A stretch of 64,000 nt of DNA, taken from sequence record ON529853.1; one strand, given 5' to 3'. The position numbers were made by a program, and so were the translations under genes. The notes beneath the pieces were generated by a model. The model saw only the letters and a program-made list of their open reading frames with translations. It searched no databases and was not told where the DNA came from. Shown here piece after piece: positions 309 to 26,110 of this stretch; within the stretch, counting starts at the first letter, position 1, and the number at the start of each line of letters is the position of its first letter.

Positions 309-444
309 GGGGCGGCTCCGGTGGTTGACCGGTCCACCCTAGAGCCGATACGTTAACAAACCGTTAACGCCGCGACGGACGCCGCGCGTTAAGGTTAACG
401 GCGGGCGGGCGCGGAAGGCCGCCCGGCGAACCGGGCGGCGGGGA

Positions 445-954
445 TCACGGCGCCAGAGGATCAGGCGGCGGGATGATCTCGACATTGCGCCGGCCCTGCT
501 TGACGCGACCGATCTTGATTCGCTTCTCGACAGCGGCGCGCGCCCATTCATGGCGCGTGGTCTCGGCGGCGTGACGGCCCGTCTCATCGACGGCGCTATA
601 GATGGAATAGAGCAGGCCGAACAGCGCAACCTCCGGCATGGCCTTGACCGCCTCCAGCATCTCGCCGTTGTCGTAGGCCCCGGACACTTCCACGACGCGG
701 GTCCCCGAGCCGTGTTGCATCAGAATGTAAAAGGTCGATTTGCGGTCGCGGCGGCGTTCGCTTTCGCCTGTGCGTCGGACGGCCAGTTTGATGTCGTAGG
801 CCCGGTAACAGACGCCCGTGCCGGGCTTGCCATTGTCCGAACCCAGGATACGCATCTCGCGTTCCGGCAGGGGATGGCGCAGGACCTCGAAAGGCTCGAA
901 CGTGGTGTCGTCGGCGTAGCCCGATCCACGGGCGATGATGGCGCTTTTCAGCAT
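445..954 (-). CDS. hypothetical phage protein
   Basis: GGAGA RBS, own CtrA-box promoter. Confidence 0.8.
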   Translation of the reverse strand: MLKSAIIARGSGYADDTTFEPFEVLRHPLPEREMRILGSDNGKPGTGVCYRAYDIKLAVRRTGESERRRDRKSTFYILMQHGSGTRVVEVSGAYDNGEMLEAVKAMPEVALFGLLYSIYSAVDETGRHAAETTRHEWARAAVEKRIKIGRVKQGRRNVEIIPPPDPLAP

Positions 955-1008
955 GGGGCGTCTCCAGTTGCGATCCCGTATCCCTACAGGACGGAAGTTA
1001 ACAGGGGG

Positions 1009-1446
1009 TTAACCGGTCACGGAATCCGAGCGGTCGCGCAGGGCGTCGGCGTAGGTGTCGAACGGCTCCGATTCCGCCTCTTCCTCGCCGTCATACCAAT
1101 GGAACCGCTGCACGGCGTCCGCATCAGGCGTCGCGCCCGGATAGGTGCGCAGGAAGATTTGCAGGTCGTCCAGATCGTCGTCGTCGGGGTCCAGCGCCAG
1201 CGCCGGGGCGGCGGGAAGGGTCGGGACCACGCCGCGCGAATAGGCCTCGACGCAGACGCCGACGAAGGTCGAGATTTCGGTGGCCTGCCGCAGGAACAGG
1301 CGCTGATTGTCTTGGGGCAGGGCTTGGGCCACGGCCACGGTGAAGGCGTCGCCGCGCAGGCTCCAGACCAGTTCACTGAAGGTTTCGACGCCGTCGTCCA
1401 TATCGGCGTAACCGACGACGGTGTAAAAGGCGGGCGATTCAGCCAT
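1009..1446 (-). CDS. hypothetical acidic protein
   Basis: RBS and CtrA box; TAA stop lies inside next box. Confidence 0.8.
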   Translation of the reverse strand: MAESPAFYTVVGYADMDDGVETFSELVWSLRGDAFTVAVAQALPQDNQRLFLRQATEISTFVGVCVEAYSRGVVPTLPAAPALALDPDDDDLDDLQIFLRTYPGATPDADAVQRFHWYDGEEEAESEPFDTYADALRDRSDSVTG

Positions 1447-1628
1447 GGGGCTCTCCTGTTTCGTTGGGGATACCCTAGCCCGAAGAAGTTAACAATAGGT
1501 TAAGACCGCGAGGTTTCTTCGGGCGGGCGTTAACCTTAACACGGCGTTAACCTTAACGGCGGACGGGCAGGGGCGGCCCCGGCCTAGAGCCGGGGCGCCG
1601 GGGCGGCGTCATTCCGCCCCGTTCCCTG

Positions 1629-1826
1629 TCAGCCTTCGTCGGGCTGATAATCCGGGTCGGGATCGAAGCGACCGCAGAACGTGCGGCCCTCTGATTCCAT
1701 ACCGGGCTCAAAAGCCCGGATGACGTACAAGGCCCGGCCCACGGTGTTGAGGTTGAGCACCGCGACCGGGGCGCCGCCCCGGTTCGCCGTGCGTTGCGCG
1801 TCGCGCTTGACCTGATCGAGGGTCAT
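1629..1826 (-). CDS. hypothetical protein (MTLDQVKRDAQ...)
   Basis: In-frame ATG just after stop of 1829-2197. Confidence 0.65.
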   Translation of the reverse strand: MTLDQVKRDAQRTANRGGAPVAVLNLNTVGRALYVIRAFEPGMESEGRTFCGRFDPDPDYQPDEG

Positions 1827-1828
1827 GC

Positions 1829-2197
1829 TCAGCCCTCGAAACGGTCGTGGACCGAAACCGGGCCGCCGAAGCGCGGGCCGCCGAGACGTTCCACGGCTTC
1901 GTTGAAACGGCTGTCCGTCGTTCCGGCGTAGTTGCCGCCCGCCATCAGCCAGCGCGTGTCCATCTCGCCGGTGTCCGTCGCCGGGACGATCTTGACCGCG
2001 CCGCGCACGTTGCCCTTGACCAGATAGGCGGCGGGGCGCGACGGGTTGGGGTCGAACGGGCCGTCGACGTTGACCAGGGTCAGTTGCGCGACCTTGGACG
2101 ACACGCCGCCGTTGGTGCAGTCCACCGAGTCCAGCTTCAAAATGTCGCCCGGTTGGTCGGCGGCGCAGCGGCGGTAGATGGAAACGATCAGGCCCAT
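1829..2197 (-). CDS. conserved-looking phage hypothetical protein
   Basis: RBS and CtrA box; DCTNGGVSS...MAGGNY..TDSRF motif. Confidence 0.8.
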   Translation of the reverse strand: MGLIVSIYRRCAADQPGDILKLDSVDCTNGGVSSKVAQLTLVNVDGPFDPNPSRPAAYLVKGNVRGAVKIVPATDTGEMDTRWLMAGGNYAGTTDSRFNEAVERLGGPRFGGPVSVHDRFEG

Positions 2198-2270
2198 GGG
2201 GCTCTCCTTTGTTTGACCTCCACACCATAGCGTGAAGGTCTTAACAAGAGGTTAACGCCGGAAAGATTTT

Positions 2271-2438
2271 TCAGGCGGCGGAAAACAGCGCAGCGGTCGA
2301 GACGCCGCCCAGCAGGGCGCGGCGGAACGGGTCGAGCGCGAGCGCCGGGGCGGCCTTGGCCTTGCGGGCGCGCGGCTTGGGCGCGGCCTTCGCGGCGGCG
2401 GGCTTGCGGGCGCGGGGCGTCTTCGGGGTGTCGGTCAT
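2271..2438 (-). CDS. small basic Ala/Lys/Pro-rich protein with C-terminal RRALLG hydrophobic segment
   Basis: Own variant box at 2497; start MTDTPK. Confidence 0.55.
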   Translation of the reverse strand: MTDTPKTPRARKPAAAKAAPKPRARKAKAAPALALDPFRRALLGGVSTAALFSAA

Positions 2439-2597
2439 GGCGAGGCCTTTCGTTGGGGGTGAAGTCCAGAGCCCCCCCCAGCCTCGCACGGAGTCCTTAC
2501 CAAAGGATTAACGGGCCAGGCGCCGCCGGGCGGGCGTTAACCTTAACGGATCGGGCGGGACCGTTAACCACGGCGGGGGTCCGCCGTGGTCGGGAGG

Positions 2598-2936
2598 TCA
2601 GTTCACCCCGGCGATGATCGAGCAGTCGCCGTAGAACTTGCCTTGGAACGGGATGCAGTCGCCTTGCGGGGTGATGTGGTGCTCAATCCAGAACCGGTCG
2701 TCGCCCTCGACCTTGGAGCCGTGCGCGTTGCTGTAGCCCTTGGCTTCCCATTCGGCGATGACTTCGGGGAAGGCGGCGCGGAAGGCGTCGCGCTCCATGG
2801 CGAACTTGAGTTCGCTCATGTAGGTGATCTGGATATAGCGGAAGGGGCCGATGGTCGGGCCTTCGAATCCCCAGTCCTCCATGTTCTGATCGGCGTCGTC
2901 GCGGCCATGGAACAGGCGCAGATGAACGTCGGACAT
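2598..2936 (-). CDS. hypothetical protein
   Basis: GGAGA RBS before MSDVHLRLFHGR; CtrA box 2981. Confidence 0.8.
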   Translation of the reverse strand: MSDVHLRLFHGRDDADQNMEDWGFEGPTIGPFRYIQITYMSELKFAMERDAFRAAFPEVIAEWEAKGYSNAHGSKVEGDDRFWIEHHITPQGDCIPFQGKFYGDCSIIAGVN

Positions 2937-3115
2937 TGGTCGTCTCCTCTTTCGATACAGACCACTATAGAGGCGATTCGTTAACAAGGGGTTAACGCCG
3001 GGACGATTTTTCAGGCAGCGCGGGCGGGCGTTAACCTTAACAGCCCGTTAACCTTAACGACCGGTTAACGGCCCCGTTAACCATGGCGGGGTCGCCGCCA
3101 TGGCCGGGGGTCCGG

Positions 3116-3376
3116 TCAGGCCGCCGGGGGCGGCGGGGGCGGCGGGATCGGGTGGGCGCGGGCGAGGGTCTTGGCGGTCCACGCGTCCGGGGTCGAGAGG
3201 TCGTAGGCCTCGGCGAACAGGCGGGCGCAGTCCTGCACCGTCTCGCCCTTCAGGTGGTCTTCATACCAGCTACGCAGTTGGTCTTCATCAGCGCCCGCGT
3301 CGCGGTAGTCGATGCCGTAGCCCGCCAGCAGGGCGGCGTTGGCGGCGGCGAGCCAGAGTTCAAACGTGGGATACAT
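3116..3376 (-). CDS. hypothetical protein
   Basis: RBS and CtrA box 3423. Confidence 0.75.
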   Translation of the reverse strand: MYPTFELWLAAANAALLAGYGIDYRDAGADEDQLRSWYEDHLKGETVQDCARLFAEAYDLSTPDAWTAKTLARAHPIPPPPPPPAA

Positions 3377-3564
3377 CGGGCGTCTCTCCTTGTTCCGATG
3401 CTTAGATCATATCCGGCAGAAGTTAACAAGAGGTTAAGACCAGAAAGATTTTTCAGGGGCCGACCGGGGCGGCGTTAACCTTAATGGCTCTTAAGCTTTT
3501 GTTAAGGTTAACGGGCGGGGCCTGGAAATGGTTAACGGACGTTAACCACTCCCCTTAACCGTCC

Positions 3565-3849
3565 CTAGTTGGGACGGTCGTCGATGAACTCGATTTTCTT
3601 TTCCGTGGTGGCGATCAGGGCCGTGACGTCGGCGATGGCGTCATCCAGCTTGGCGGCGCCCTTGTAGGTCTTGCCGGTCCAGCCGCCGACCATCGCCAGC
3701 AGGTTCTTGGCGGTGTAGGCCCGGTTGACCTTCATGCCGATCTTGAGGGCGCGCAGGCCTTGGCGAACAACGATCATCTGGTAGCGGGCGATGGCCTCGC
3801 CGGTGTGGGTGACGGCGCCGTGTTCGGAGATGTGGACTTGATCGGTCAT
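3565..3849 (-). CDS. hypothetical protein
   Basis: CtrA box 3894. Confidence 0.75.
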   Translation of the reverse strand: MTDQVHISEHGAVTHTGEAIARYQMIVVRQGLRALKIGMKVNRAYTAKNLLAMVGGWTGKTYKGAAKLDDAIADVTALIATTEKKIEFIDDRPN

Positions 3850-4045
3850 GTCTGTGTTCCCTTGTTGGTGAGATCACTATAGCGGCCCGGTTCTTAACAA
3901 CAAGTTAAAATCGAAATAAATCGTGCCTAACGAAAAGGGTTAATTTTTCGGGGCCGGGCGTTAACCTTAACAAGAGGTTAACGGCTGTTAAGGTTAACGC
4001 CAGCGGGTCAGGCGAGACCGCCCCGGCGAACCGGGGCGGCGGGGG

Positions 4046-4669
4046 TCAGCCCAGTTGAATCGCGCCGTCGTCGGCGGTGTAGAGGTAGACTTCTTCGGGG
4101 TATTTTTGCGCGGCTTCCGTCAGGGCCTCGCCTTCCGCTTCGGGCCAGTCGCCGTCTTCCCAATAGCCGACGCCGCTGCGGGTCCGGGTCATGTAGAAGT
4201 CATAACCGGCTTGCTCCTGCACCGAACAGTTGACCGCGCGGACCTCGCCCGACGCGTAGGCCGCTTCCAAGGTGGCGGCGTTCTCGCGTTGGAAGCGTTC
4301 GCAATCCGCGACCATTTCGCGCAAGCCGTCCGGGTGAATCTCTTCCGGGCAAATCGTGTTGTCGCGGTCGTGGTCCGCGTTCGGGTGTCCGGTCGGATAC
4401 TCGGCGCCGTTGGAGGCGGCGGCGGCGATATAGCCGCGCGTGAACGGATCGCACGGCGTCAGGATCGACCAGGACTCGGCCTCATAGGCGGCGCGCGCCT
4501 CGGCGTAGGCCTCTTCGAGGGCGTCCACAACGGCGCGGGCTTCCGCGACCAGAGCGGCGGGTTCCGTGTGCGGATATTGCATCACCGTCAGGGCGGCGAT
4601 CTGCTGCGCCGTCAGGGGGCTATAGTCGGGGACCGTGGTTTCGGCGGTCAGCTTGGCGAGGGTCGTCAT
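4046..4669 (-). CDS. hypothetical protein (GYDFYMTR..GVGYW..GDW motif)
   Basis: GGAG RBS before MTTLAKL; CtrA box 4714. Confidence 0.75.
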   Translation of the reverse strand: MTTLAKLTAETTVPDYSPLTAQQIAALTVMQYPHTEPAALVAEARAVVDALEEAYAEARAAYEAESWSILTPCDPFTRGYIAAAASNGAEYPTGHPNADHDRDNTICPEEIHPDGLREMVADCERFQRENAATLEAAYASGEVRAVNCSVQEQAGYDFYMTRTRSGVGYWEDGDWPEAEGEALTEAAQKYPEEVYLYTADDGAIQLG

Positions 4670-5041
4670 GGGGTTGCTCCCGTTGATGTGCGAGCATATT
4701 GCACGCCAAGGTCTTAACAACAAGTTAACGCCGCGCAGATTTTTCGGCGGGCGGGCGGGCGTTAAGGTTAATGCGAAAGGCTCGCAAGGGGCGGCGTTAA
4801 CCTTAACAGAATCGTCCGAAAATTAACCATGCCCGTTGACGTTTTCTTAACGACTCGGCGCTAGGCTCAAGGGTTCCATAGCCACGCCTCGCGCCGGGTC
4901 CGACCCCCCGCGCGCGGTGTCACGCGCTCGCCTCGACCGGGGCGGGGCGCCCGGCCACGCGCCCCGACATCGGGAGGCGCGAGCCCGCCCGGCTGGGCGG
5001 TCGATCGGTCATGCCGGCGACCGCCAGGGCGGGGGTGCGTC

Positions 5042-5185
5042 GAATCGAAACGGCGTCAGGTCAAGTCGGCCGGCGTCAAAACGAAACGGCGTCAGGTCAA
5101 GTTCGCCCGCGTCAAATCTAAATGGCGTCAAGTCAAGTTCGCCAGCGTCAAATCGAAACGGCGTCAGGTCAAGTTCGCTCGCGTC
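5042..5185. repeat. Repeat family A, left copy: four tandem 36-bp units rich in CGTCAA/CGTCAG
   Basis: Units start 5042, 5078, 5114, 5150. Confidence 0.9.
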
Positions 5186-5265
5186 AAGTTTGATCCGCCA
5201 GGACCTGAGCGAAAACGAAGACGCCCGGCGCGCATGAAAGCGGCCGGGCGTCAGGGGTCATCCGT

Positions 5266-5334
5266 TCAGAAACAGAGGCCCACAATCATGAGGGCGAAAA
5301 CGATCTTGGACGCGGAACAGAGTTTATCGAGCAT
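5266..5334 (-). CDS. 22-aa hydrophobic peptide MLDKLCSASKIVFALMIVGLCF
   Basis: AAGGAAG RBS, downstream hairpin 5221-5251, paralogue at 23063. Confidence 0.6.
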   Translation of the reverse strand: MLDKLCSASKIVFALMIVGLCF

Positions 5335-5358
5335 ATTCAGGGGCTTCCTTCTACTAAG

Positions 5359-5502
5359 GAGTCACGCCCGGTAGTAAACGTGACAGGTCGTGGGAACGCT
5401 ACAGAGAGAAATCTCGCGAGTCATCGTCTGTGTGTAACGTGACTGAACTATTTGTTAATCCGGTCGGGGGATTGGAGTCACGCCCGGTGGGAAACGTGAC
5501 TC
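5359..5502. repeat. Repeat family B, left copy: three dyads GAGTCACG-N11/12-CGTGAC(TC)
   Basis: Start 5359, 5418, 5475; the last is a perfect inverted repeat. Confidence 0.85.
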
Positions 5503-5515
5503 CGGGGTTTTGGCG

Positions 5516-6547
5516 TCAGTCGGCGCTCTGGGCGATGACCGTGGCGGCGGTCGTGCGGCTGGCGAACTGCTCGCTCGCGATGTCCCCCTTCAGCCCCTCA
5601 AAGGCCATGATGCTCGCCCTCAGGTCCGGGGCGATGTAGTCGGTCCCCTCAGCGGTCGCGTCCGCCTGAAACAGGTCCAGCAGGCGCGCCCGCACCCCGG
5701 CGGCGTCGTCCGCATAGAGGATCGGCGCCCCTTCCTGCTCGGGCTCGATCCGATACGGGCGGGGCTCGCACTCGATCTCGAACGGCCCTTGCCAGTTGCG
5801 GACCTCGACCGGCGCCAGGGCGGCGTCGGACAGTTCGTCAAAGACGCCGTTCTCACGGTCGCCGCATTCCTCGACCTCGGCCTGAGACACGAAGAACTCA
5901 TGCCGGGCGTCGTCCGCCGCGATAGCGTGGTCCATGATCCACGCCTGGCCTTGGAAGGTCGCGCGATAGGGCAGGGTTTCAGGCGCCGGCAGGGCGGACG
6001 CCGGGGGGTCGCGGTCCATCCAGAAGCGGTAGAGGGCCGCCCAGGCGCGCGCCCGCTGGCGGTCGCCGGTCGCGGGCAGATAGGCGTCGTGCAGGGCCTC
6101 GGCGGCGGCGTCCCGGTCCGGGCCGTCCGGATCGGCCTGATCCGCCTCATGGGCGTCAAAGGTCAGCAGGACGGCTTGCGTATGGCGGGCGGTCCATTCA
6201 CCGGCCGGACCCGCCGCCAGAACCTCGCGCACCTCGGGGAGGGTCAGGTGGGAAAACTGGGCAGGGTCCCCGGCGATAAATTCCGAAGGGTCCCCGGCCT
6301 TCGATTCGGCAGGGTCCCCGGTGATGAATTGGGCAGGGTCCCCGGTGATGAATTGGGCAGGGTCCCCGGTGATGAATTGGGCAGGGTCCCCGGCGATGGA
6401 TTCGGCAGGGTCCCCCCGCTCGATTCCGTCCGCGATGACGTAGAGCCGCCCGATGAGACCTTGAGCGGCCTCCGGCGTGGGGTTGTGGCGCAGCGCCAGC
6501 ACTTGGGCGGCGGCGGCGCGGATCAGGGCGGGGTAGGTGGTGCTCAT
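5516..6547 (-). CDS. hypothetical protein containing GDPAQFIT-type tandem repeats
   Basis: GGAG RBS, CtrA box 6601. Confidence 0.8.
   Translation of the reverse strand: MSTTYPALIRAAAAQVLALRHNPTPEAAQGLIGRLYVIADGIERGDPAESIAGDPAQFITGDPAQFITGDPAQFITGDPAESKAGDPSEFIAGDPAQFSHLTLPEVREVLAAGPAGEWTARHTQAVLLTFDAHEADQADPDGPDRDAAAEALHDAYLPATGDRQRARAWAALYRFWMDRDPPASALPAPETLPYRATFQGQAWIMDHAIAADDARHEFFVSQAEVEECGDRENGVFDELSDAALAPVEVRNWQGPFEIECEPRPYRIEPEQEGAPILYADDAAGVRARLLDLFQADATAEGTDYIAPDLRASIMAFEGLKGDIASEQFASRTTAATVIAQSAD
6264..6414. repeat. Repeat family C, left copy: seven GGGTCCC cores at exact 24-bp period, inside a CDS
   Basis: Cores at 6264,6288,6312,6336,6360,6384,6408. Confidence 0.95.
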
Positions 6548-6739
6548 AAAGGGCTCCTCTTGGAGGGAGATGATCAGAGGTCCTGTCTAGCGGCCAATCG
6601 TTAACATCCGGTTAACAGGCCGCATTCAGGGCCGGGCCGGGGTTCACCCGGCGTTAAGGTTAACGCCGGACGGGCGACCAGAAAGCGCCCGCCGGGGGAG
6701 ACAACCCGGCGGGCGCGGTCCTGACGGGAAGACAGTCCG

Positions 6740-7219
6740 TCAGGGGATCGGGGTCAGTTCGTCCTCGAAGGCGTCGTATTCGACGCCCGCGTCGTCTTTG
6801 ACCCGATAGGCGGGGCCGACCTCGACCGCCTCGTCCTCGTCCAGCGGGCGGATGACCTCGACCCGGTGATAGGGCGGCGTCGTGGCCTCCGGGCAGGTCG
6901 AGGCCCAGTGCAGAACGTCGCCGGGCGCGAAGGCGAAGTCGGGTTCGGGCTCGGATTCGTCGTCGCCGAACGACGGCTCCTGTTCCGTTGAGGAGTCCTC
7001 GATCTGTGTTCCAGGCCAGGACACGCCGGGATCGGCCAGAGACCGCAAACAGCCGTCAATGTTCGGGGCGGTGCGGGTGCCGATGTAGTCGCTGTAGCAG
7101 TCCGGTTCCCCGACCGGCTCGGACGGGTTGTCCCGGCGCCATTGCTGCAAGGCGGCGTCGAACAACTCGCGCGGATTGGTCACGACGACGCTGATGGATA
7201 TGGTGTAGGCGCGGCTCAT
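6740..7219 (-). CDS. hypothetical protein, possible C-terminal SH3/Tudor-like barrel
   Basis: RBS and CtrA box 7269. Confidence 0.75.
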   Translation of the reverse strand: MSRAYTISISVVVTNPRELFDAALQQWRRDNPSEPVGEPDCYSDYIGTRTAPNIDGCLRSLADPGVSWPGTQIEDSSTEQEPSFGDDESEPEPDFAFAPGDVLHWASTCPEATTPPYHRVEVIRPLDEDEAVEVGPAYRVKDDAGVEYDAFEDELTPIP

Positions 7220-8041: not shown

Positions 8042-8200
8042 GGTGTCTCCTGTCGTTGCGTTGAGGCTGTTCTAGCAGCCATTCCTTAACAAGAAGTTAA
8101 CGCCAGTCAATTCTTTTCAGGCGGCGGGGCGACCGCCAGGCCCGTTAACCTTAACGCGAGCGGGTCGCAGAACGCCCGGCCAAAGCCGGGCGCCTTTGAC

Positions 8201-8929: not shown

Positions 8930-9062
8930 GGTGTCTCCTGTCGTTGTGCTGATCCTGTTCTAGCACCGATTCGTTAACAACAAGTTAACGGCGCGAGGAA
9001 ACTTCGGCGTTAACCTTAACGCGCCGGGATCGCAAAGCGCCCGGCCGAAGCCGGGCGCTGCG

Positions 9063-9866: not shown

Positions 9867-10004
9867 GACTGTCTCCTGTCGTGGCGTTGATCCTGTTCTA
9901 GCACCGATTCGTTAACAAGAGGTTAACGCCGCGCTGCGAAACGCTCGCGTTAACCTTAACGACCGGCGCCCCGAAAACGCCCCGGCTTCGGCCGGGGCGC
10001 AGGG

Positions 10005-11396: not shown

Positions 11397-11538
11397 GAGG
11401 TGTCTCCTTTGTTCCTGATCGTTCTAGCAGGGATTCGTTAACAAGAGGTTAACGACGCGGGGGAAAACGCGCCGGGCCGGCGTTAACCTTAACGCGAGTT
11501 GGTCGCAGAAAGGCCGGGGCGAACCCCGGCCTTGCGCG

Positions 11539-12234: not shown

Positions 12235-12411
12235 GGGGTCTCCTGATCCAGCATAGGGTTCTAATGCTGTTGAACATAGGCACCATGTCTTAACAAAAGG
12301 TTAAAATCAAGCGGCATTAGAACCCTATGCCGGAAGAAAGTGGTTAACTCCGCGTTAAGGTTAACGGCCCGCTCCGGGCAAAAGAAAACCCGGCCGAAGC
12401 CGGGTCTCTCG

Positions 12412-13752: not shown

Positions 13753-13912
13753 GACGGGTGTCTCCTGTCGGATGGCGTTGAAGCCTGTCTAGCAGGAAGG
13801 TCTTAACAAGAAGTTAACGGGACGACAAGGGGAGATTTTAACTTTTCGTTAAGGTTAACGAGCGGCGGTCGGAAAAGGAGCGCCCGGCTGTTTGAAAGCC
13901 GGGCGCTGGGGT

Positions 13913-14524: not shown

Positions 14525-14666
14525 GGGGGTCTCCTTCGTTGAGGCTCCCTTGTCGCACGGATTCATTAACAAGAGGTTAACGCGCCGCTTTTATTTTCCG
14601 TTAAGGTTAACGGCCGGGCGGGGGGCCGAAAAAGCCCGCCGGGGGAGACAACCCGGCGGGCTCGGT

Positions 14667-15223: not shown

Positions 15224-15225
15224 GG

Positions 15226-16284: not shown

Positions 16285-16340
16285 GGGGCGTCTCCCGTGT
16301 TTCGATGATCTGACCCTACAGGACAGATGTTAACAAGAGG

Positions 16341-16883
16341 TTAATGGTAGGCGTCGATTTCCGACAGCGGCGGCAGGATGCGGAAGGGGATCGCCTCGCC
16401 GCCGTTCGCCTTGGCGAAGGCGTTCTCATAGGTCTTGTAGAGGCGGTCGCGGCGCCCGTCCGTGCGCAGGGTCCACTTGGTGGGGTGGCCGGGTTCCCAA
16501 TTCTGATTGTGAGCGGCCTCGACGGCGGCGATGAAGTTCGCGACGGTCATTCCGTCATGGTCCTGCCGGGTCGGGGAGATGCTGTTCAGTTCGTGCCAGG
16601 GGTGGTCGTCGGCGTAGTGGGCGCCGCCGCCGTCGCTGGACCACGAAGCCGATTCCATCCCCAGCATGACGGGCAGGAAGTCGTCGCCGTCGCCGGTCAG
16701 CAGGGAACAGACCTTGACCGCCTGCTCCATCGTCATCAGGCCGTCCAGAATGAATTCCAGATGCTCCTTATAGTTGGAAGCGTCGCGATACATATAGGAC
16801 AGGCGCGTGTTCTGTCCCGGATGGCCCGCCCAGACGGACGGGTTGATCTGGTGCGGCAGGGCGGCGGGGGTCTGGTCGGTCAT
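16341..16883 (-). CDS. hypothetical protein (YMYRDASNYK motif)
   Basis: RBS and CtrA box 16936; stop inside next box. Confidence 0.8.
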   Translation of the reverse strand: MTDQTPAALPHQINPSVWAGHPGQNTRLSYMYRDASNYKEHLEFILDGLMTMEQAVKVCSLLTGDGDDFLPVMLGMESASWSSDGGGAHYADDHPWHELNSISPTRQDHDGMTVANFIAAVEAAHNQNWEPGHPTKWTLRTDGRRDRLYKTYENAFAKANGGEAIPFRILPPLSEIDAYH

Positions 16884-17429: not shown

Positions 17430-17585
17430 GGGGCGTCTCCCTTGTTCGATGATCCCTTATAGCCACAATGTCTTAACAAAAGGTTAATGCCATGACAAGG
17501 GCGTGCGGGCGTTAACCTTAATGTGGCGTTAAGGTTAACGCGACCGGGTCGCAAGAAAGGTCCCCGGCCGAAGCCGGGGACGGGG

Positions 17586-18050: not shown

Positions 18051-18205
18051 GGGCGTCTCCTCCCGGTTGATCCTGAGACCATAGACCCTAGAAGTTAACA
18101 AGAGGTTAACGCCGTGAACGTCATGCGCCGTTAAGGTTAACGCCCGCGTGCGGGGAAAGCCGCGCCGCCGGGGGAGACAACCCGGCGGCGCGGCAGGCGG
18201 CGACC

Positions 18206-19176: not shown

Positions 19177-19345
19177 GGGGTCTCCTCCCGTTGCTGACCC
19201 TCCCTGTATCGCATGAAGTTCTTAACAACAAGTTAACGACGTGATTTATTTCCGGCGGCGGGCGGCGGGCGTTAACCTTAACGCGCTGTTAAGGTTAATG
19301 CGAGCGGGTCGCGGAAGGGGCGCCCGGCCGAAGCCGGGCGCCGGT

Positions 19346-19486
19346 TCAGGCGGCGGTGCGGTAGCGGGTGTGGCCCCGGTCCCAGGTGTAGGCCTCGACC
19401 GATCCGCTCGGGTGGGGGTTGTTCCACCACTTGACGCCCCGGCGCGCGGCGGCGTAGCCCGCGCCTTCGATCTGGGCGGCGTCCAT
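19346..19486 (-). CDS. Rmf-like (ribosome modulation factor fold) 46-aa protein
   Basis: MDAAQIEGAGYAAARRGVKWWNNPHPSGSVEAYTWDRGH resembles GY.A..G....NPY......W..GW; TGATG coupling. Confidence 0.5.
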   Translation of the reverse strand: MDAAQIEGAGYAAARRGVKWWNNPHPSGSVEAYTWDRGHTRYRTAA

Positions 19487-19731
19487 CAGGCGCCGATCCG
19501 GTGGGCCGGGCAGAAGCCCGACACGACCTTGACGCGACCACGCTTGAAACCGGGGCGCAGGGCGCGCGCCGAGCGTTCGGCGTCGGCGGTCTTCATGTGA
19601 CCGCAGGCGCAGGACGCGCCGGGGTCGCGGGTCTGGGCCTCGCGCACCTTGTCGGCGCCGGCCTGTGTGCCGAGCCAGCCGCAGAAGGGCTCGCCGCCGA
19701 CCGTGATGTGAGCGGGTTGGGTGTTAATCAT
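19486..19731 (-). CDS. hypothetical Cys/His protein
   Basis: Operon position. Confidence 0.65.
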   Translation of the reverse strand: MINTQPAHITVGGEPFCGWLGTQAGADKVREAQTRDPGASCACGHMKTADAERSARALRPGFKRGRVKVVSGFCPAHRIGA

Positions 19732-20260
19732 CGTCGCCGTCCTCCTCGTCCTGGGGCATATCCTCGGCGTCGGTCAGGCCGGTGACGGTCCACCAGCCGA
19801 GGCCTTGAGCGTCACCCGACGTGTAGCCTTCGCGGACCATCGTCGCCATCGCTTCCAACGCGTCGGCCACGTCCTCGTCGGTCATGGCGTCGTGACCGTT
19901 GAAGGTGAAGGTCGGCTTGACCGTCACCGGGGCGGGGGTCGATTCGCTGTTGATCTCTTCATGATGCGTCACGCTCTCGGCGACGATCTCAGCGAGGTCG
20001 TCGCCGACCAGCATCCAGTCTTCGGCGTCGCCGTCCGGGTCATAGACGACGAAGGCGCCGGGGTATTGCGCGACGCGGGCGCGCCAGCCGTTGCGCACCT
20101 CGGCGTGTTTCTCGGCGATCCAGTCGGCGCCCATATGGGTTGCGCCCTCGTAGGCTCTGACCGGGAAATTGGTCGTCATCAGTTCGCTGCGGGTGGCGAC
20201 GCGCAGGCCCCACACGTCGAGGGCGGTCTGGGCTTGCGTCAGGGTCATGGCGTCGGGCAT
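19724..20260 (-). CDS. hypothetical protein
   Basis: GGAGG RBS before MPDAMTL. Confidence 0.75.
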   Translation of the reverse strand: MPDAMTLTQAQTALDVWGLRVATRSELMTTNFPVRAYEGATHMGADWIAEKHAEVRNGWRARVAQYPGAFVVYDPDGDAEDWMLVGDDLAEIVAESVTHHEEINSESTPAPVTVKPTFTFNGHDAMTDEDVADALEAMATMVREGYTSGDAQGLGWWTVTGLTDAEDMPQDEEDGDDD

Positions 20261-20270
20261 CGGGGCCTCC

Positions 20271-20468
20271 TTAGAGATGGATCGCGGCGTCGAACGCCTG
20301 GGATTGCAGTTTCTTGGCGGCTTCGGCCTCGGCGGGGTAGAGCCGGGCCAGGCCGTCAAAGCGTTCTTTCTGATGCGAGCGCTCGCCCTCGGCGGCGGTC
20401 ATGTGCATGACCTCGCCCCACAGGTGGGCCATTTCGAGGATCAGGACAGAGCGGCGGGAAGCGTTCAT
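20271..20468 (-). CDS. hypothetical protein
   Basis: RBS and CtrA box 20510. Confidence 0.75.
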   Translation of the reverse strand: MNASRRSVLILEMAHLWGEVMHMTAAEGERSHQKERFDGLARLYPAEAEAAKKLQSQAFDAAIHL

Positions 20469-20520
20469 GGCGGTCTCCTTGTTGACCTCGCCACCCTAGC
20501 AGCGAGGTCTTAACAAGAGG

Positions 20521-20766
20521 TTAACAGCGGCGGAGCATTTCACGCATCAGGGCTTCCTCGTTGCGGGCGATGTCCAGCGCGGCGCGGTCGTGGCCTTGCT
20601 CATGCGCCTGCTTGGCCTGCTGTCGGCAGATGTCCTGGCGCTTGCGGATGTCAGCCTCCGACAGGGTGCGGAACAGGGCGTCGGCCTCCTGATCGACCTT
20701 GACGGTCCAGTGCTGCTGCGATTCGTCGTCGGCGCGGAGATGGGCGGGGAAGTAGGCGTCGGCCAT
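20521..20766 (-). CDS. hypothetical protein
   Basis: GGAGG RBS; stop inside next box. Confidence 0.75.
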   Translation of the reverse strand: MADAYFPAHLRADDESQQHWTVKVDQEADALFRTLSEADIRKRQDICRQQAKQAHEQGHDRAALDIARNEEALMREMLRRC

Positions 20767-20774
20767 GGGTCCTC

Positions 20775-21086
20775 CTAAAGGTTCTGGTCGCGGACGCGGG
20801 CGAGCGCGGTGTGGACGGCGGGGAGCAGGGTCGGCGTCTGGCCGCTCATCCAGAACTCGGTCGCGTCGCCCTCGCCCATCTGATGCGAGACGCCGTAGAA
20901 GCAGGCGCCGCGCGGGGTGTCGTCATTGGGGCATTGGACCCAGACCGGCAGGTCTTGGCCGTCGCGGGTGAGGACCAGCGCGTCATCCGTGCTGCCGTCG
21001 TCGGCGACCTCATAGCGGGCCGACAGGCCGGCAGCGGTCAGCAGGGTCATGGCGGCGGTCCAGGGGGCGCCTTGGGGAAGGGGCAT
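20775..21086 (-). CDS. hypothetical protein
   Basis: RBS and CtrA box 21128. Confidence 0.75.
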   Translation of the reverse strand: MPLPQGAPWTAAMTLLTAAGLSARYEVADDGSTDDALVLTRDGQDLPVWVQCPNDDTPRGACFYGVSHQMGEGDATEFWMSGQTPTLLPAVHTALARVRDQNL

Positions 21087-21221
21087 TGCGATCTCCTTTG
21101 TGCTGACCCTGTTCTAGCAATGATTCGTTAACAAGAGGTTAACGTCCTGCGCGGTGGTCCGGGGCGTTAACCTTAACAGGGTCAGGCCGGAAAACGCCCC
21201 GGCCGAAGCCGGGGCGCAGGG

Positions 21222-22112
21222 TCAGCCGACCCGCTCCTTCTTGAGGTGGTAGGACCGACCGTGGGTCATCAGGGAGCGGAACCCGCCCAACCGGGTCTCG
21301 CCCGGCGCCGGGGTCACGACATAGACCGGATCGAGGAAGTCGTCGTTCCAGCGGATCACGTCGTCGAACGCCTGCGGCGTGTGCAGCACGACCTTATAGG
21401 GTTCGCCTTCGGGCGCGACCAGATCGGTGGTGTGGTCCTCGTCGCCCTTGTAGCCGAACACCGACAGGACCGCGACCGGCAAGCCGTCGTCGAGCGTCGA
21501 GAGGTCTTGCAGGGCGCGGGCCTCGGCCAGCCGCTTGTGCGGCTCATAGAGGGCGCAGTCGCGCTTGAGCAGGTCAGCGCGCAAGGCGACGACACGCTGG
21601 GGCGTCAGGTCCAGAGACGCGCAGGCCCCGATGACGACGCCGTAGATGAAGCCGAGTGCGTGCTGCGTGAGCGACACCATGCCGTCCATTCCCGCCGTCG
21701 CGACCTCCTGATTTTTCAGGCCGAACGCCGCCAGGGCGCCGGCGACGTCGCGGCACTCCTGCCGGGTCGGGGCGGTCTTGGCCTCGATGTGGAGGCGCAG
21801 GGTGTCGCGGGCCTTCATCAGGTCCACAATCGCCAGCGACAGGCCGGTGTAGCGTCCATCTTCGACCGGGGCGGGCTTGGGCTTCGGGGCCGGGTAGGTC
21901 TCGACGCACAGCAGGCGGGCGCGGGTCTCCTCGACCGTATAGACCTCGACCTGATAGGCCATGCCGAGCGCCACGCGCAGTTCGTTGCGGATCGCCAGAC
22001 CGGCCTCGGGGTCGGTGGTGGTCAGGCGCAGTTCGCCGATCCGGCGGTCCTCGCCCTGGGCGGGATGGCGGCGCGACAGTTCGAGGCGCAGGTCGTAGGG
22101 GGCGTCGGTCAT
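21222..22112 (-). CDS. hypothetical protein
   Basis: RBS and CtrA box 22155. Confidence 0.8.
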   Translation of the reverse strand: MTDAPYDLRLELSRRHPAQGEDRRIGELRLTTTDPEAGLAIRNELRVALGMAYQVEVYTVEETRARLLCVETYPAPKPKPAPVEDGRYTGLSLAIVDLMKARDTLRLHIEAKTAPTRQECRDVAGALAAFGLKNQEVATAGMDGMVSLTQHALGFIYGVVIGACASLDLTPQRVVALRADLLKRDCALYEPHKRLAEARALQDLSTLDDGLPVAVLSVFGYKGDEDHTTDLVAPEGEPYKVVLHTPQAFDDVIRWNDDFLDPVYVVTPAPGETRLGGFRSLMTHGRSYHLKKERVG

Positions 22113-22165
22113 CAGGGTCTCCCGTGGTTGAGCGTCCGGTATAGCCGGAAGGTCTTAACAAACCG

Positions 22166-22537
22166 TTAACGGCGGTCTTCGCTGAGGCGGGCGAGTATTT
22201 CGTCGTTCGTCATCGTGTCCAGCAGGTCTTGCACCTGACGGGCCTTTTCGTCCTCGACCGCCTGAGCCGCCGCCTTGGCGCGGCGATGCTCGGCCAGCGC
22301 CGCCTTGCCCGCTTCGGTCGTCTCCGGGTCGATGGTCATGTAAAGGCTGACCTCGCGGCCCTGCCGATCCACGAAGGTCAGGCTTCCAGACGGACGCACC
22401 TTGACGGTGAACATCGCCTTGACCAGCCGCTCGGCGGTCTCTTGACCGAAGTCGCCGCCGAAGCTGCCGCCCGCCGCCTTGAGGGTGTTGTCGCTCTTGA
22501 GGCGGGTGTGATAGCCGATGTTCTTGTAGGTGTGCAT
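22166..22537 (-). CDS. hypothetical protein
   Basis: GGAG RBS before MHTYKN; stop inside next box. Confidence 0.75.
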   Translation of the reverse strand: MHTYKNIGYHTRLKSDNTLKAAGGSFGGDFGQETAERLVKAMFTVKVRPSGSLTFVDRQGREVSLYMTIDPETTEAGKAALAEHRRAKAAAQAVEDEKARQVQDLLDTMTNDEILARLSEDRR

Positions 22538-22547
22538 GGGGCGCTCC

Positions 22548-22886
22548 TTAGAAGGGAATGTCGTCGTCGAACGCGGGCGTCGTGACATAGGTCTGGGCGC
22601 GGCGGGCGCGGCGGGCGGCGTCCATCTCGGCGCGCTCCTCGTCCGTCGCGCTCCAATACTCGTCGTCTTCCGGGTGCGCGCCGGGCTCGCCGCGATAGTG
22701 CGGGTTCTTCACCCAAGCGTCGAACGGGTGCAGCAGCCACTCCACGTCAGGCGCCTCGAAGCCTTCCGACTGAGCGAACCCCGACAGGGCCAGGCTCATG
22801 TATTCGCCCTGGCTCAGCGACTCCATCGCCAGAGCGTCTTCCTTTTCGCGGCGGGCCTCTTCGGCCATTTCGATCACATCGCGCAT
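22548..22886 (-). CDS. hypothetical protein (NPHYRGEPGAHPE motif)
   Basis: GGAGA RBS; CtrA box 22928. Confidence 0.75.
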   Translation of the reverse strand: MRDVIEMAEEARREKEDALAMESLSQGEYMSLALSGFAQSEGFEAPDVEWLLHPFDAWVKNPHYRGEPGAHPEDDEYWSATDEERAEMDAARRARRAQTYVTTPAFDDDIPF

Positions 22887-23062
22887 CGGCGTCTCTCCTT
22901 GTGAGCCCCCTTTATGCCAGACATAAGTTAACAACAAGTTAACGCCGACGCTTTTCTGCATTTTTCTTCAGGCGGCGGCTGCGGGCGTTAACCTTAACAG
23001 CCTGTTAAGGTTAACGGGCGGGCGGGGCCTGGGAAACGGCGTCCCGTAACGGGACGCCTCTC

Positions 23063-23131
23063 CTAGAAGGTGAGCATGATGACCAGCAGGGCCAGAAAGA
23101 GGCGGGAGGCGCCGGCCAGCTTGTCGATCAA
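23063..23131 (-). CDS. 22-aa hydrophobic peptide (M)IDKLAGASRLFLALLVIMLTF
   Basis: TTGA overlap; aligns without gaps to the 5266-5334 peptide. Confidence 0.55.
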   Translation of the reverse strand: MIDKLAGASRLFLALLVIMLTF

Positions 23132-23598
23132 GACTCGCTGTCCGCTTTCATCGCCGCGCACAGGGTTTCGACCAGCCGCTTGTGACGCGCCAGAGCGGCG
23201 GGGTCGGCGCGCTCGCCTTGGAAGGGGACCAGCACCAGAGGTGTGGCCGAGGGGTCCAGCGCCCAGAAGATTTCCGTCTCGCCGTCCGTCATCTGGTAGG
23301 TATAGACGTTCAGGTCGGCGGGGGCGTGGTCGAGGAAATAGACGCGCCCGTTGAACTTGACGTCGAAGGGCTGATCCGGCGTCGCCAAGTCGATCTCGGC
23401 CAGCACGGCGTCGCGCACGGCGTCAATCGGGTGAACGCCGTCTTCGCCGATTTCATCAGGACGGGATTCGGCCTCGGCCTCCGCGTCGCGCTTGATGTCC
23501 TCGACCACGGCGGCGCGCGCCTCCTCCCAAGTCGCACAGGCGCTGGGCTCCTCGTCGGGCATGAAGCCCGAGACATTCGATCCGGTCACATAAGGCAT
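23128..23598 (-). CDS. hypothetical protein
   Basis: GGAGA RBS before MPYVTGS; CtrA box 23646. Confidence 0.75.
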   Translation of the reverse strand: MPYVTGSNVSGFMPDEEPSACATWEEARAAVVEDIKRDAEAEAESRPDEIGEDGVHPIDAVRDAVLAEIDLATPDQPFDVKFNGRVYFLDHAPADLNVYTYQMTDGETEIFWALDPSATPLVLVPFQGERADPAALARHKRLVETLCAAMKADSES

Positions 23599-23689
23599 CG
23601 GGGTCTCCTTGTTGGTTCCGATGGTGCAGACTACCCGACAAGGTCTTAACAAAAAGTTAACAGCGGCGCAATCGCTTTTCTTCGCGACG

Positions 23690-23704
23690 TTAACCTCTTG
23701 TTAA
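23690..23704 (+). promoter_or_regulatory. CtrA box in plus orientation (divergent promoter)
   Basis: TTAACCTCTTGTTAA upstream of 23751. Confidence 0.85.
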
Positions 23705-23750
23705 CTTCCGTGTGGGATAAGGGACAGGTCAACAACACAGGAGATCGCCG

Positions 23751-23996
23751 ATGGGCGAAGTCATCCCGCACCGCGTCTGGCGCAACACCCGGACCGAACG
23801 CACCGCTGGCGTGTTCGGCGCCGTGCCTTGGGTCTCGGACGCGGAGAAGTCCGACTGGGAACTGGTCACGGTCGGCTGGACCGTTCGCCACCCGGACGGC
23901 ACGACCGGGGTCGGTCGCTTCGCCTTCGAGACGAAGGACGAGGCGCAGGCTTGGGTCGATGAGAATCCCAACTTCCCCGGCATGAGCCAAGGCTAG
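23751..23996 (+). CDS. hypothetical protein, only plus-strand gene of the array
   Basis: GGAGA RBS, box 23690, hairpin at 24002-24030. Confidence 0.8.
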   Translation: MGEVIPHRVWRNTRTERTAGVFGAVPWVSDAEKSDWELVTVGWTVRHPDGTTGVGRFAFETKDEAQAWVDENPNFPGMSQG

Positions 23997-24153
23997 TCAC
24001 AAGGGCGTCGGTCGCAAGGCCGGCGCCCTTCGCCGCTGCGACCGGCTCGCGTTAACCTTAACAGGGCGTTAACCTTAACAACCCTGCCCGCTCTAGGGGT
24101 ATGACCGGGTAGGGCCAGGTATGACCGGGTCATACCGGGGCGGATTCCCGCTG

Positions 24154-24238
24154 AAAATCACCCAAATTCGCCGAATTTCGCCCAAAATCGCCGGATTTTG
24201 ACCTTAAATCACTGTTTTTACTCGATTTTTCAGGTTTT
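24154..24238. other. 10-bp-phased A/T tracts (predicted curved DNA)
   Basis: Nine consecutive tracts one helical turn apart. Confidence 0.75.
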
Positions 24239-24254
24239 CAGGCGGTTCAGCGGC

Positions 24255-24410
24255 CGTTAACCTTAACAGGGCGTTAACCTTAACGCTGGAATGGTTAACG
24301 GGGCGTTAACCTTAACGCGGGGATGGTTAACGCGGTGTTAACCTTAACGCGGGGATGGTTAACGGGCCGTTTACCTTAACGCCGGGAGGGTTAACGCCCC
24401 CAGGGTTAAT
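24255..24410. repeat. Dense tandem array of TTAA half-sites and 12-mers (~32-bp unit)
   Basis: GTTAACCTTAAC-GCGGGGATG-GTTAAC units. Confidence 0.9.
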
Positions 24411-24415
24411 CCGGG

Positions 24416-24660
24416 GCGCGTCAAATCGGGCGCGCGTCAAATTCGGCCGGCGTCAAATCGAAACGGCGTCAAGTCAGGTCGGGCGCGTTGAAGCGCGCTC
24501 GCGTCAAATCCAGATCGCGTCAAATTCGCGGGGCGTCAAATCGCGCTCCCGTCAAATCGGCCGCGCGTCAAATTCGCAGGGCGTCAAATCGGCCGCGCGT
24601 CAAATCGGCGGGGCGTCAAGTCGACCAGGCGGCGTTGAAGCGCGCCGACGTCAAGTCGGG
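24416..24660. repeat. Repeat family A, right copy: ~14 CGTCAA(A/G)T(T)C units
   Basis: Shares identical 22-mer GCGTCAAATCGAAACGGCGTCA (24450) with left copy (5145). Confidence 0.9.
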
Positions 24661-24857
24661 CTGCCAGGGCGCGCCCGAGCGGGCTTGCGCGGCGCTCCGC
24701 CTTCCAGGGAGGACGACCCGGAAGAAACGGCCTGAAACGCGCCCTGACGCGTCTTTGTAGCCCAGGCAGGGGCGCGGTCAAGCCGAGCGGGGTCGAGAAG
24801 GCCGTTTTCCGGGCCGTGGAGCGCCCTGGCGCGGGCGCGGCGGCCGCAGGGTCGCCG

Positions 24858-25306
24858 GAGTCACGAAATCCATCCACGGGCCGGAAAACCAGGCCCTGCG
24901 GGCGATCGTCAGTCACGATACCTATGAACGATGACTCTGCCTGGATTTTTGTCAGTCACGAAACCCGGAGGCGGGCTTCGCCGGCGATCCTGGCGCCCAG
25001 GCGGATCAGTGTCAGCGGTTGTGTCAATGCGGGACACAATAAGGCGGGATTAGGGCGAAATGGGATTTCAGGGCGGAGTCACGTTCCCCGGAATCGGGGC
25101 TCGGGGCTTCTGTTGATTTCATTGAGGTTTTTCTGGAAATCGCCGCGAAACGGAGTCACGAAGTCCGTTGTGCAGTGCAGCATTGCGGGCGTTTCGGCCG
25201 GGTCCAGACGGGGCGAAACGGAGTCACGTTTTCCTAAGCCGTTGGGATCATTACGCTTTTCCGACAGGGTCAGCACCTGAGTCACGTTTGACACGAACGA
25301 TGACTC
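24858..25306. repeat. Repeat family B, right copy: (G)AGTCACG half-sites and dyads
   Basis: 24858, 24911(+24929), 24954, 25076, 25153, 25221, 25279(+25298). Confidence 0.85.
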
Positions 25307-25322
25307 CGGCATCAGAGGCCCG

Positions 25323-25408
25323 AAAACAGGCAAAATCACTGTAAAATCAGGTATTTAGGGGTGTTTTTCGGGGATTTTAGGCGAATTCAGCGCCGTTTTC
25401 GGTGAAAA
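25323..25408. other. Second phased A/T-tract segment
   Basis: Tracts near 25323,25332,25343,25353,25364,25374,25384,25396,25405. Confidence 0.7.
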
Positions 25409-25569
25409 CGGGCCACAGACTCGCTGGGAAGGTCTTGCCGCCCCGCTGAACGCCCGGCACGCTGCCGATGACGCCGCTTCCGCTCCCAGGGCGAGGGGCG
25501 GATGATCTGGACCGCCCAGAAGAGCAGCAGAAGGAAGACCAGGCCGCCCATCACGATCGCTATCGCCAT
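25387..25569 (-). CDS. 60-aa membrane-anchored basic peptide (MAIAIVMGGLVFLLLLFWAV...)
   Basis: GGAGAG RBS; TM helix plus Arg-rich tail. Confidence 0.5.
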   Translation of the reverse strand: MAIAIVMGGLVFLLLLFWAVQIIRPSPWERKRRHRQRAGRSAGRQDLPSESVARFHRKRR

Positions 25570-25602
25570 TTCGCGCTCTCCAGCCCCCTGGGAAAACACC
25601 CA

Positions 25603-25808
25603 GGGTCCCTGACGGAAAAATTCGGATGGGTCCCCGGTCAGGAATTCGCCAGGGTCCCTGGACGAAGAATTCCGAAGGGTCCCCGGCGGGAAAATTCGCC
25701 AGGGTCCCTCGACCAGAAAATCCCGATGGGTCCCCGCCCGGATTATCGCCAGGGTCCCTGGGCGAAGAATTCCGAAGGGTCCCCGGCCCGAAAATCCGGA
25801 AGGGTCCC
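25603..25808. repeat. Repeat family C, right copy: nine GGGTCCC cores at 24-26 bp period
   Basis: Cores at 25603,25628,25652,25677,25702,25728,25752,25777,25802. Confidence 0.95.
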
Positions 25809-26110
25809 CGCAGGCTACCACGCGGCGGCCGGCGCCGCCATGGGCGCCCGGCGTTAACCTTAATGGGGCGTTAACCATGCCTGTTAAGGTTAACGCCGGG
25901 GCAGGCCGCGTTAACCCTTTGATCGTTAAGGTTAACGCCGGCCGAAACTGGCGCGAGATCGTTGACAGGCGACTCAGACGGGGTGTCGCGCTTATGTCAC
26001 AGTTGAGTGGCGCCTTTGACTGTCAACGAATCGCGTCTGGAAATCGCTTCCAGCGGAGCCCCGGTTTTGGACCTCTTCCTGGCCTTTCCTGGATCATATC
26101 CCAACATCCA

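Follow-up and report, generated by a model that had tools for sequence, protein, structure and literature searches.

A TTAA doublet linked to terminator-like hairpins in the genome of Brevundimonas phage Bambus and its relatives

The first 64,000 nucleotides (bases 1-64000, hereafter the window) of the Brevundimonas jumbo phage vB_BpoS-Bambus (ON529853.1, 348,100 bp, Dolichocephalovirinae, host B. pondensis) contain a 12-nucleotide word, GTTAACCTTAAC, which recurs between the genes of a long minus-strand block. From 445 to 23,598 the annotated genes are all small, hypothetical and on the minus strand, and terL lies beyond them on the same strand (26,169-28,892). A sequence-only reading of this DNA, made by a model without database searches, had noted about 35 copies of the word or of its general form TTAA-N2-TTAA (hereafter the doublet). 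This was borne out: the window holds 33 exact matches to GTTAACCTTAAC, counted on both strands (0 in 100 shuffles), and 38 matches to TTAA-N2-TTAA. Motif units are read below along the minus strand.

The 12-mer is an inverted repeat, GTTAA/TTAAC, flanking an asymmetric centre; what is conserved as a unit is its core, TTAA-CC-TTAA, flanked mainly by G and C. The centre of TTAA-N2-TTAA is CC/GG in 106 of 107 occurrences (Bambus 54/55, CcrSC 38/38, Lacusarx 12/12, phiCbK 2/2). Merely seven variants of GTTAACCTTAAC have one mismatch and five have two, which makes the word unusually sharp. Single copies are found both ways, and the downstream member of pairs 17 bp apart is in the GG orientation in 18/18 cases.

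The whole Bambus genome, whose record is annotated as circular, contains 48 exact copies of GTTAACCTTAAC; 47 of these form a single ~37.4-kb block (336,600 to 25,936) that spans the point where the record opens. The block begins ~230 nt downstream of terL, as it does in relatives. The 48th copy (32147-32158) lies within coding sequence (CDS) BAMBUS_00530 and is the sole copy in the window past 26 kb, as had been claimed; the 0-26 kb limit given with that claim is an artefact of where the record opens, since the block wraps around that point. The block contains 252 TTAA, 139 GTTAAC, 70 TTAA-N7-TTAA, 55 TTAA-N2-TTAA and 13 copies of TTAACCAT, a word bound up with CtrA and SciP in the hosts, compared with 17, 3, 0, 1 and 1, respectively, in the adjoining 38 kb of equal G+C. 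Distances from one TTAA to another peak solely at 6, 11 and 17 bp. Over window positions 26000-64000 the 17 TTAA in 38 kb are about half of what base composition predicts, and this scarcity outside the block suggests avoidance of stray CtrA half-sites.

A canonical CtrA box has half-sites 7 nt apart, with an 11-bp period, and overlaps the -35 region of promoters that CtrA activates, or else the origin or promoters that it represses. The single unit described here has N2 spacing, as the sequence-only reading had recognized, and stands upstream of the promoter box. Only the 17-bp pairs yield a canonical box, with one TTAA-N7-TTAA between the inner TTAAs of each pair. The pairs reported at 1529/1546, 3030/3047 and 24051/24068 are indeed 17 bp apart, start to start, and each contains one such box. 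Doublets with no neighbouring doublet within 40 bp make up 24 of 54 in Bambus; single copies predominate and form no TTAA-N7-TTAA.

The long intergenic regions share an order of elements along the minus strand. A GC-rich hairpin with a short T run is followed by a 15- to 20-nt linker, one to four motif copies, a GC-rich spacer, in some cases bearing a GAAAAAT patch, and then a promoter and a ribosome-binding site. In Bambus the promoter has a canonical CtrA box (GTTAAC-N5-GTTAAC/G) as its -35 element and a GCTAGAAC-like -10 element, and the linkers and promoters of neighbouring cassettes are visibly related. Short intergenic regions have a promoter and neither hairpin nor motif. Placement between hairpin and promoter, in both orientations, had been described before and is confirmed: in 33/37 Bambus clusters a GC-rich hairpin lies directly upstream in the sense of minus-strand transcription, with the promoter after the motif. 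Motif clusters without a promoter occur at convergent gene ends (Bambus 24,051-24,079 and CcrSC 16,326-16,369).

The strongest regularity was overlooked by the sequence-only reading: the motif is locked to the putative terminator hairpin, at ~18 nt, and not to the promoter. Hairpin gaps were taken from an explicit stem search, as minimum free energy folding is unreliable in GC-rich DNA. The median gap from hairpin to motif (median absolute deviation in brackets) is 18 nt (2) in Bambus, 19 nt (2) in CcrSC and 17 nt (2) in Lacusarx, and it lies between 14 and 22 nt in 42 of 53 junctions; the same gap likewise peaks at 16-19 nt in uncultured contigs. The gap from motif to promoter is 30 nt (9), 42 nt (7) and 43 nt (9), respectively; between the end of the motif and the promoter box that follows there are 17-51 nt in Bambus and 14-210 nt in relatives. 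The difference in spread between the two gaps reached significance in Bambus (Levene, P = 0.011) but in neither CcrSC (P = 0.095) nor Lacusarx (P = 0.23). As linker sequences differ between phages, it seems to be the spacing itself that is conserved. Some CtrA-box promoters in window 1-26000 carry a GAAAAAT patch, UP-element-like, 12-15 nt upstream of the box; the presence of this patch in a subset of promoters accounts for the longer motif-to-promoter gaps.

The stems in front of the 33 clusters are 7-15 bp long, with tails of ~2-5 T. A standard terminator scan, which needs five T in eight, recovers just two of these hairpins in 1-20 kb, so their U-tracts are weak. From their sequence the hairpins are putative intrinsic terminators with weak U-tracts.

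Conservation in relatives had been named as a check on the motif, and the 12-mer or its core is kept in phages of Caulobacter, Brevundimonas and Sphingobium. Exact 12-mers number 46 in Papperlapapp, 47 in Marchewka, 41 in Gurke and 32 in Kikimora; per terminal repeat there are 16 in CcrSC, 18 in CcrBL9 (plus one elsewhere), four in CcrBL10 and two in phiCbK. The 10-bp core is found twice per repeat in CcrPW, four times in Bajun, once in Mesorhizobium phage Cp1R7A-A1 and 12 times in Sphingobium phage Lacusarx. Where a relative's terminal repeats are annotated, almost all copies lie within them (CcrSC 32/32, CcrBL9 36/37, CcrBL10 8/8, phiCbK 4/4, CcrPW 4/4), and the 12 copies of Lacusarx lie in a 10.5-kb double-coverage region after terL. 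Between Bambus and Papperlapapp 215/216 motif columns are identical, compared with 79-95% in the flanks, and the motif is identical across phages whose repeats share 1-12% identity and whose hosts come from three orders.

The promoters in the repeats of CcrSC and Lacusarx are of sigma70 type (TTGACA/TTGACG at -35) and have no CtrA box, although the 12-mer is kept between hairpin and promoter. Not one TTAA-N7-TTAA occurs in Lacusarx, despite its 12 doublets; thus, the interlocked TTAA-N7-TTAA is a by-product of pairing rather than the conserved unit. Colossus has no exact 12-mer. Its junctions are without the motif, a cluster of a consistent variant (GTTAGGGTTAAC) lies near its left end, and TTAACCAT stands exactly 18 nt after two hairpins, in the motif's place.

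In IMG/VR, a search for doublet pairs spaced by 17 bp gave 58 stretches on ~40 contigs, many of which have 10-27 doublets and several TTAACCAT per ~10 kb; at least 20 carry a terL of Lacusarx grade beside the motif. An extreme example of the signature is a 14.8-kb stretch of IMGVR_UViG_3300010368_000237 (44% G+C) next to a related terL, with 182 TTAA, 39 TTAA-N7-TTAA, 37 TTAACCAT and 34 doublets, 12 of them with centre CG. It is clear that the motif is real, sharply defined and under purifying selection, that it is confined to the block, coupled to hairpins and independent of promoter type, and that it recurs in a CtrA-site-rich region of an unrelated phage.

This unrelated phage is Delta, of B. 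subvibrioides, which shows 2% identity to phiCbK and has one protein in common with it. Delta has six exact and five near-exact cores, every one in its CtrA 'gap region'. Within an 81-bp probe from this region the doublets stand in 6/11/6/11 spacing and include the exact words GTTAACCTTAAC and GTTAAGGTTAAC. CtrA~P (phosphorylated CtrA) shifts the probe in an electrophoretic mobility shift assay, and the gene adjoining the probe region is derepressed in a ctrA-ts host (PMC9437464). The terminal repeats of phiCbK-like phages are rich in CtrA sites (Mascolo et al. 2022, PMC9437464), and the sites predicted there for the CcrSC repeat are boxes built from doublets. In its half-site, TTAAC, the motif agrees with CtrA sites. 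The counts above show TTAACCAT to accompany the motif; the consensus for SciP from chromatin immunoprecipitation (ChIP) is (G/A)TTAACCAT(A/G) (PMC4083442), from which GTTAACCTT differs by one change, matching at 7/8 positions, and Colossus has GTTAACCCT. No gene for a Trans_reg_C (PF00486) or DUF1153/SciP (PF06627) protein was found in six frames of Bambus, CcrSC or phiCbK, with a positive Caulobacter control.

A host factor is favoured, with CtrA first and SciP as a possible partner, because the word is shared with Delta, its half-site is that of CtrA, it resembles the SciP word and no phage gene for either protein was found. With moderate confidence, the 12-mer with its core TTAA-CC-TTAA is read as a boundary element of an early block of terminal-repeat type, most likely bound by host CtrA~P, possibly together with SciP. 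It is presumed that CtrA binds a single doublet and that this binding affects transcription. Of the two options in the sequence-only reading, extra CtrA half-sites (for cooperative loading or titration) and the operator of a phage-encoded regulator or recombination factor, the relation to CtrA is the better supported, on the Delta probe, the link to TTAACCAT and the lack of a phage CtrA or SciP gene. Cooperative loading is not supported, as motif and promoter box show no helical phasing and the motif is kept where promoters have no CtrA box.

Several points weigh against binding by CtrA at such a boundary. The phasing of the motif relative to the promoter CtrA box was not significant (best resultant 0.32, matched by 20% of random sets). 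Four of the 37 Bambus clusters have no hairpin, and the fixed gap could in part reflect tight packing of elements instead of functional coupling. The shifted Delta probe also holds canonical TTAA-N7-TTAA boxes. The 12 bp, central CC included, are far more invariant than ordinary CtrA boxes, which is to be expected from a dedicated binder. Colossus, which has the same host as phiCbK and CcrSC, employs the consistent variant TTAGGGTTAA, and this could reflect co-evolution with a phage protein. With half-sites 6 bp apart, the two TTAAs face almost opposite sides of the helix, which is not known as a binding mode of OmpR-family regulators. Finally, it is from relatives only that the Bambus block is taken to be a probable terminal repeat; the direct terminal repeats of phiCbK-like phages begin within the 3' part of terL or shortly after it, and are marked by doubled read depth and defined ends.

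Some of these points would suit an operator for a DNA-binding protein that the phage encodes or injects, that is conserved throughout the phiCbK-Lacusarx supergroup and that might shut off or insulate early units. Such an operator would explain the extreme invariance with its fixed asymmetric CC centre, the departure from CtrA-box spacing, the independence of promoter type and the consistent Colossus variant on the same host, and a related terL adjoins the motif in most uncultured contigs. It is nevertheless rather unlikely. The unrelated Delta has the same word in a CtrA-binding region, the half-site is that of CtrA and the host-factor word TTAACCAT can replace the motif. No candidate gene was found, in searches that did not extend to ParB/KorB-type or RHH-type proteins, and the genes of the terminal repeat are not conserved across the group (PMC9437464). 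In addition, the 12-mer occurs in bacterial chromosomes, with 34 matches in one family compared with seven for a reversed control. It is rare in 401 Alphaproteobacteria (at most three per genome); the bacterial genome scan with the phiCbK GcrA-like protein reached non-Caulobacterales only. Roughly half of 22 bacterial sites inspected lie outside long open frames, one is 24 nt after a hairpin and several have an additional TTAA at N6-N7; the genes beside ten such sites gave no clear CtrA-regulon pattern. In alphaproteobacterial genome G172 (contig C102, 67% G+C) positions 3050-3640 form a 600-bp non-coding tandem array of ~60-bp units, each with a degenerate or exact GTTAAGGTTAAC (~12 copies), flanked by an L,D-transpeptidase gene and an asparaginase/hslU/yebC/ruvB region. 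The suggestion in the sequence-only reading of an operator for a recombination factor gained no specific support.

The primary binder may instead be host SciP or a CtrA-SciP complex, the doublet being a strong SciP-type extended half-site with which these phages, which infect G1 (swarmer) cells, would capture SciP or place it. The near match of GTTAACCTT to the ChIP consensus favours this, as do the positions of TTAACCAT, which alternates with the 12-mer in the array at 24.26-24.38 kb, lies 21-22 bp from the doublet in Lacusarx cassettes and substitutes for it after Colossus hairpins. Direct DNA binding by SciP is disputed in the literature, however, and the second half of the 12-mer (TTAAC) falls outside the SciP consensus. 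SciP, or a complex of it with CtrA, is distinctly unlikely as the primary binder.

It is highly improbable that the motif has its role outside transcription, whether by marking the terminal repeat so that it is packaged or duplicated or by serving as a site at which early-gene cassettes recombine and are shuffled. Confinement of the motif almost wholly to the terminal repeat, in relatives with annotated ends, would fit such a role, as would the finding that in every case a core cluster stands 1-3 kb downstream of terL, next to repeats of iteron-like and GGGACCC type. Delta, however, has no terminal repeat and yet carries the motif in a regulatory gap; the fixed hairpin distance and intergenic placement suit transcription; 12 bp is short for homologous exchange; and the presence of both orientations is unlike Chi-type signals. 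That the 12-mer is a functionless passenger of a duplicated intergenic cassette, as the visible kinship of linkers and promoters between adjacent cassettes of the same phage might suggest, is extremely unlikely, being contradicted by a 12-mer that stays exact while its flanks diverge, is identical across phages with hardly related repeats and hosts of three orders, and occurs in the unrelated Delta.

If host CtrA~P is the binder, the motif would act as a compact double half-site, its two TTAACs 6 bp apart rather than 11, separated from the preceding unit's hairpin terminator by ~18 nt and from the next promoter by 20-50 nt or, at times, by far more. The bound protein would meet the front of RNA polymerase as it arrives at a short, weak U-tract and would thereby backstop termination at weak terminators. 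The boundary element might also insulate the next unit and block transcription from either side, and CtrA would be retained near the next promoter. A bolder and tentative proposal, unlikely as it stands, is that hairpin, ~18-nt gap and TTAA doublet together make a factor-dependent terminator and insulator gated by the cell cycle through CtrA~P, with or without SciP. CtrA~P on the doublet would then halt polymerase, so that early units would be separate only in the CtrA-high (swarmer) state; as CtrA falls, read-through would fuse units and switch the programme. If true, this would be a cell-cycle-gated termination device common to a wide clade of Alphaproteobacteria phages, perhaps also present in host chromosomes.

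Positions of the motif clusters in the window are collected in the table.

Table. Motif clusters and associated elements in the window of phage Bambus
Feature	Coordinates	Strand	Context
Single 12-mer	388..399		18 nt after hairpin, 20 nt before CtrA-box promoter
Direct pair, 17 bp apart	1529..1557		Inner TTAAs form TTAA-N7-TTAA
Single 12-mer	2536..2547		Between hairpin and promoter
Direct pair, 17 bp apart	3030..3058		
Exact copy and one-mismatch copy (ATTAAGGTTAAC)	3474..3512		Inverted, 27 bp apart
Inverted pair, 27 bp apart	3960..3998		Extra TTAAC in between
Exact and one-mismatch copy, 35 bp apart	4761..4807		Promoter-proximal, no nearby hairpin
Single 12-mer	6653..6664		20 nt after hairpin
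Single 12-mer	8144..8155		15 nt after hairpin
Whole example junction	8930..9062	minus	Hairpin 9059-9036, 15-nt linker, 12-mer 9020-9009, spacer, CtrA-box promoter from 8988, GCTAGAAC -10 element 8964-8957, then ribosome-binding site
Single 12-mer	9949..9960		16 nt after hairpin
Single 12-mer	11482..11493		16 nt after hairpin
Single 12-mer	12354..12365		19 nt after hairpin
Single 12-mer	13848..13859		19 nt after hairpin
Single 12-mer	14600..14611		20 nt after hairpin
Inverted pair, 17 bp apart (one member one-mismatch)	17511..17539		20 nt after hairpin
Single 12-mer	18130..18141		17 nt after hairpin
Inverted pair, 17 bp apart (one member one-mismatch)	19271..19299		19 nt after hairpin
Single 12-mer	21166..21177		16 nt after hairpin
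Inverted pair forming a 29-bp palindrome	22987..23015		22 nt after hairpin
Direct pair at convergent gene ends	24051..24079		Plus-strand gene 23751-23996 terminates here; no adjacent promoter
Array of four exact copies and one variant	24256..24380		17-bp pair, then 32-bp period with 12-mer alternating with TTAACCAT (TTAA-N7-TTAACCAT)
Two exact copies and one variant	25853..25936		Block opens here, ~230 nt downstream of terL
Lone copy in CDS, outside block	32147..32158		Same place kept in Papperlapapp (95041) and Marchewka (94629)

Other elements lie among these clusters. The sole plus-strand gene of the block (23751-23996, 81 amino acids) has its own divergent CtrA-box promoter, and its product shows 36% identity (E 4e-14) to CcrSC gp031c, which is likewise encoded by the sole opposite-strand gene. 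As a candidate DNA-binding protein this product was rejected, with just a weak NDUS4-like match. Repeats containing TTGACGC, iteron-like or -35-like, are found at 24408-24623 (~13 copies, periods 16-20) and 5037-5189 (~5 copies, period 36). In phiCbK (1775-1900) and CcrSC (about 2950-3080) matching TTGACG arrays adjoin the motif cluster, where Lacusarx has a different iteron. The stretch at 24100-24250, between two motif clusters, is AT-rich, with short direct repeats and CCGGTATGACCCGGTCATACC-type inverted repeats; similar ACCCGGTA...TACCGGGT dyads occur in phiCbK and Colossus. Taken as a whole, this stretch and the iterons look origin-like. Just downstream of terL (25600-25810) are ~8 tandem copies of a ~25-bp unit built on GGGGACCC/AGGGACCC, and a second such array (6260-6415, 6.5 x 24 bp) lies inside CDS BAMBUS_00100. 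GGGACCC repeats are present at the equivalent place in phiCbK, CcrSC, Colossus and Lacusarx. Both kinds of repeat are candidates for a packaging or repeat-end signal.

Published work describes the CtrA sites of the repeats as 'TTAA-N7-TTAA near promoters', and the conserved word is here TTAA-CC-TTAA, kept exact across Caulobacter, Brevundimonas and Sphingobium phages and many uncultured viruses. The main text of PMC9437464 mentions neither a TTAAC word nor a second motif, and the 12-mer in this context was not found in the literature searched. New relative to that literature are the doublet as a conserved unit, its coupling to putative terminators and its persistence without CtrA-box promoters. 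If CtrA binds the doublet, it would represent a second class of CtrA site, and CtrA would act where it has not been placed before, at the boundaries of units; if CtrA does not, the motif points to a conserved DNA-binding factor not yet known. Either way it bears on how these phages read the host cell cycle. No case is known to us of response-regulator sites that regularly accompany intrinsic terminators.

The motif shares with the canonical CtrA box, as found in phiCbK-like repeats (PMC9437464), the TTAAC half-site and the terminal-repeat compartment of early genes without assigned function, and two 12-mers 17 bp apart generate such a box. In contrast to that box, its half-sites are 6 and not 11 bp apart, its centre is invariant and it mostly occurs singly, without an N7 partner. 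It is also locked to the terminator instead of sitting at -35, and is kept before sigma70-type promoters. With TTAACCAT, the 8-mer CtrA half-site that also forms the SciP ChIP consensus (PMC4083442), the 12-mer has GTTAACC-N-T in common, and in Colossus TTAACCAT shows that both words can occupy the place 18 nt after a hairpin; however, the 12-mer extends into a second TTAAC and has T rather than A at position 8. In hosts TTAACCAT is found in promoters of S-phase CtrA targets, whereas the phage 12-mer lies behind terminators.

At Caulobacter pilA, extra CtrA sites upstream of the -35 site repress the promoter and sharpen its sensitivity, and two of the sites are just 3 bp apart, giving a junction like TTAA-N2/3-TTAA (PMC11264516). 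At pilA, however, the sites are full boxes of degenerate sequence, fixed in position within a single promoter, whereas the phages have an exact 12-mer at dozens of boundaries. The Delta probe region has the same exact words in the same 6/11 spacing; there they are crowded into a single cluster that separates divergent genes in a phage of 87 kb, whereas in Bambus they are dispersed and linked to terminators.

Protein roadblocks such as lac repressor, EcoRI-Q111 and those of CodY/CcpA type stop RNA polymerase, and a gap of 18 nt is about the reach of the polymerase ahead of its active site. By analogy only, the junctions described here resemble such roadblocks in that they may place a tightly binding protein at a fixed, short distance past a stop point.

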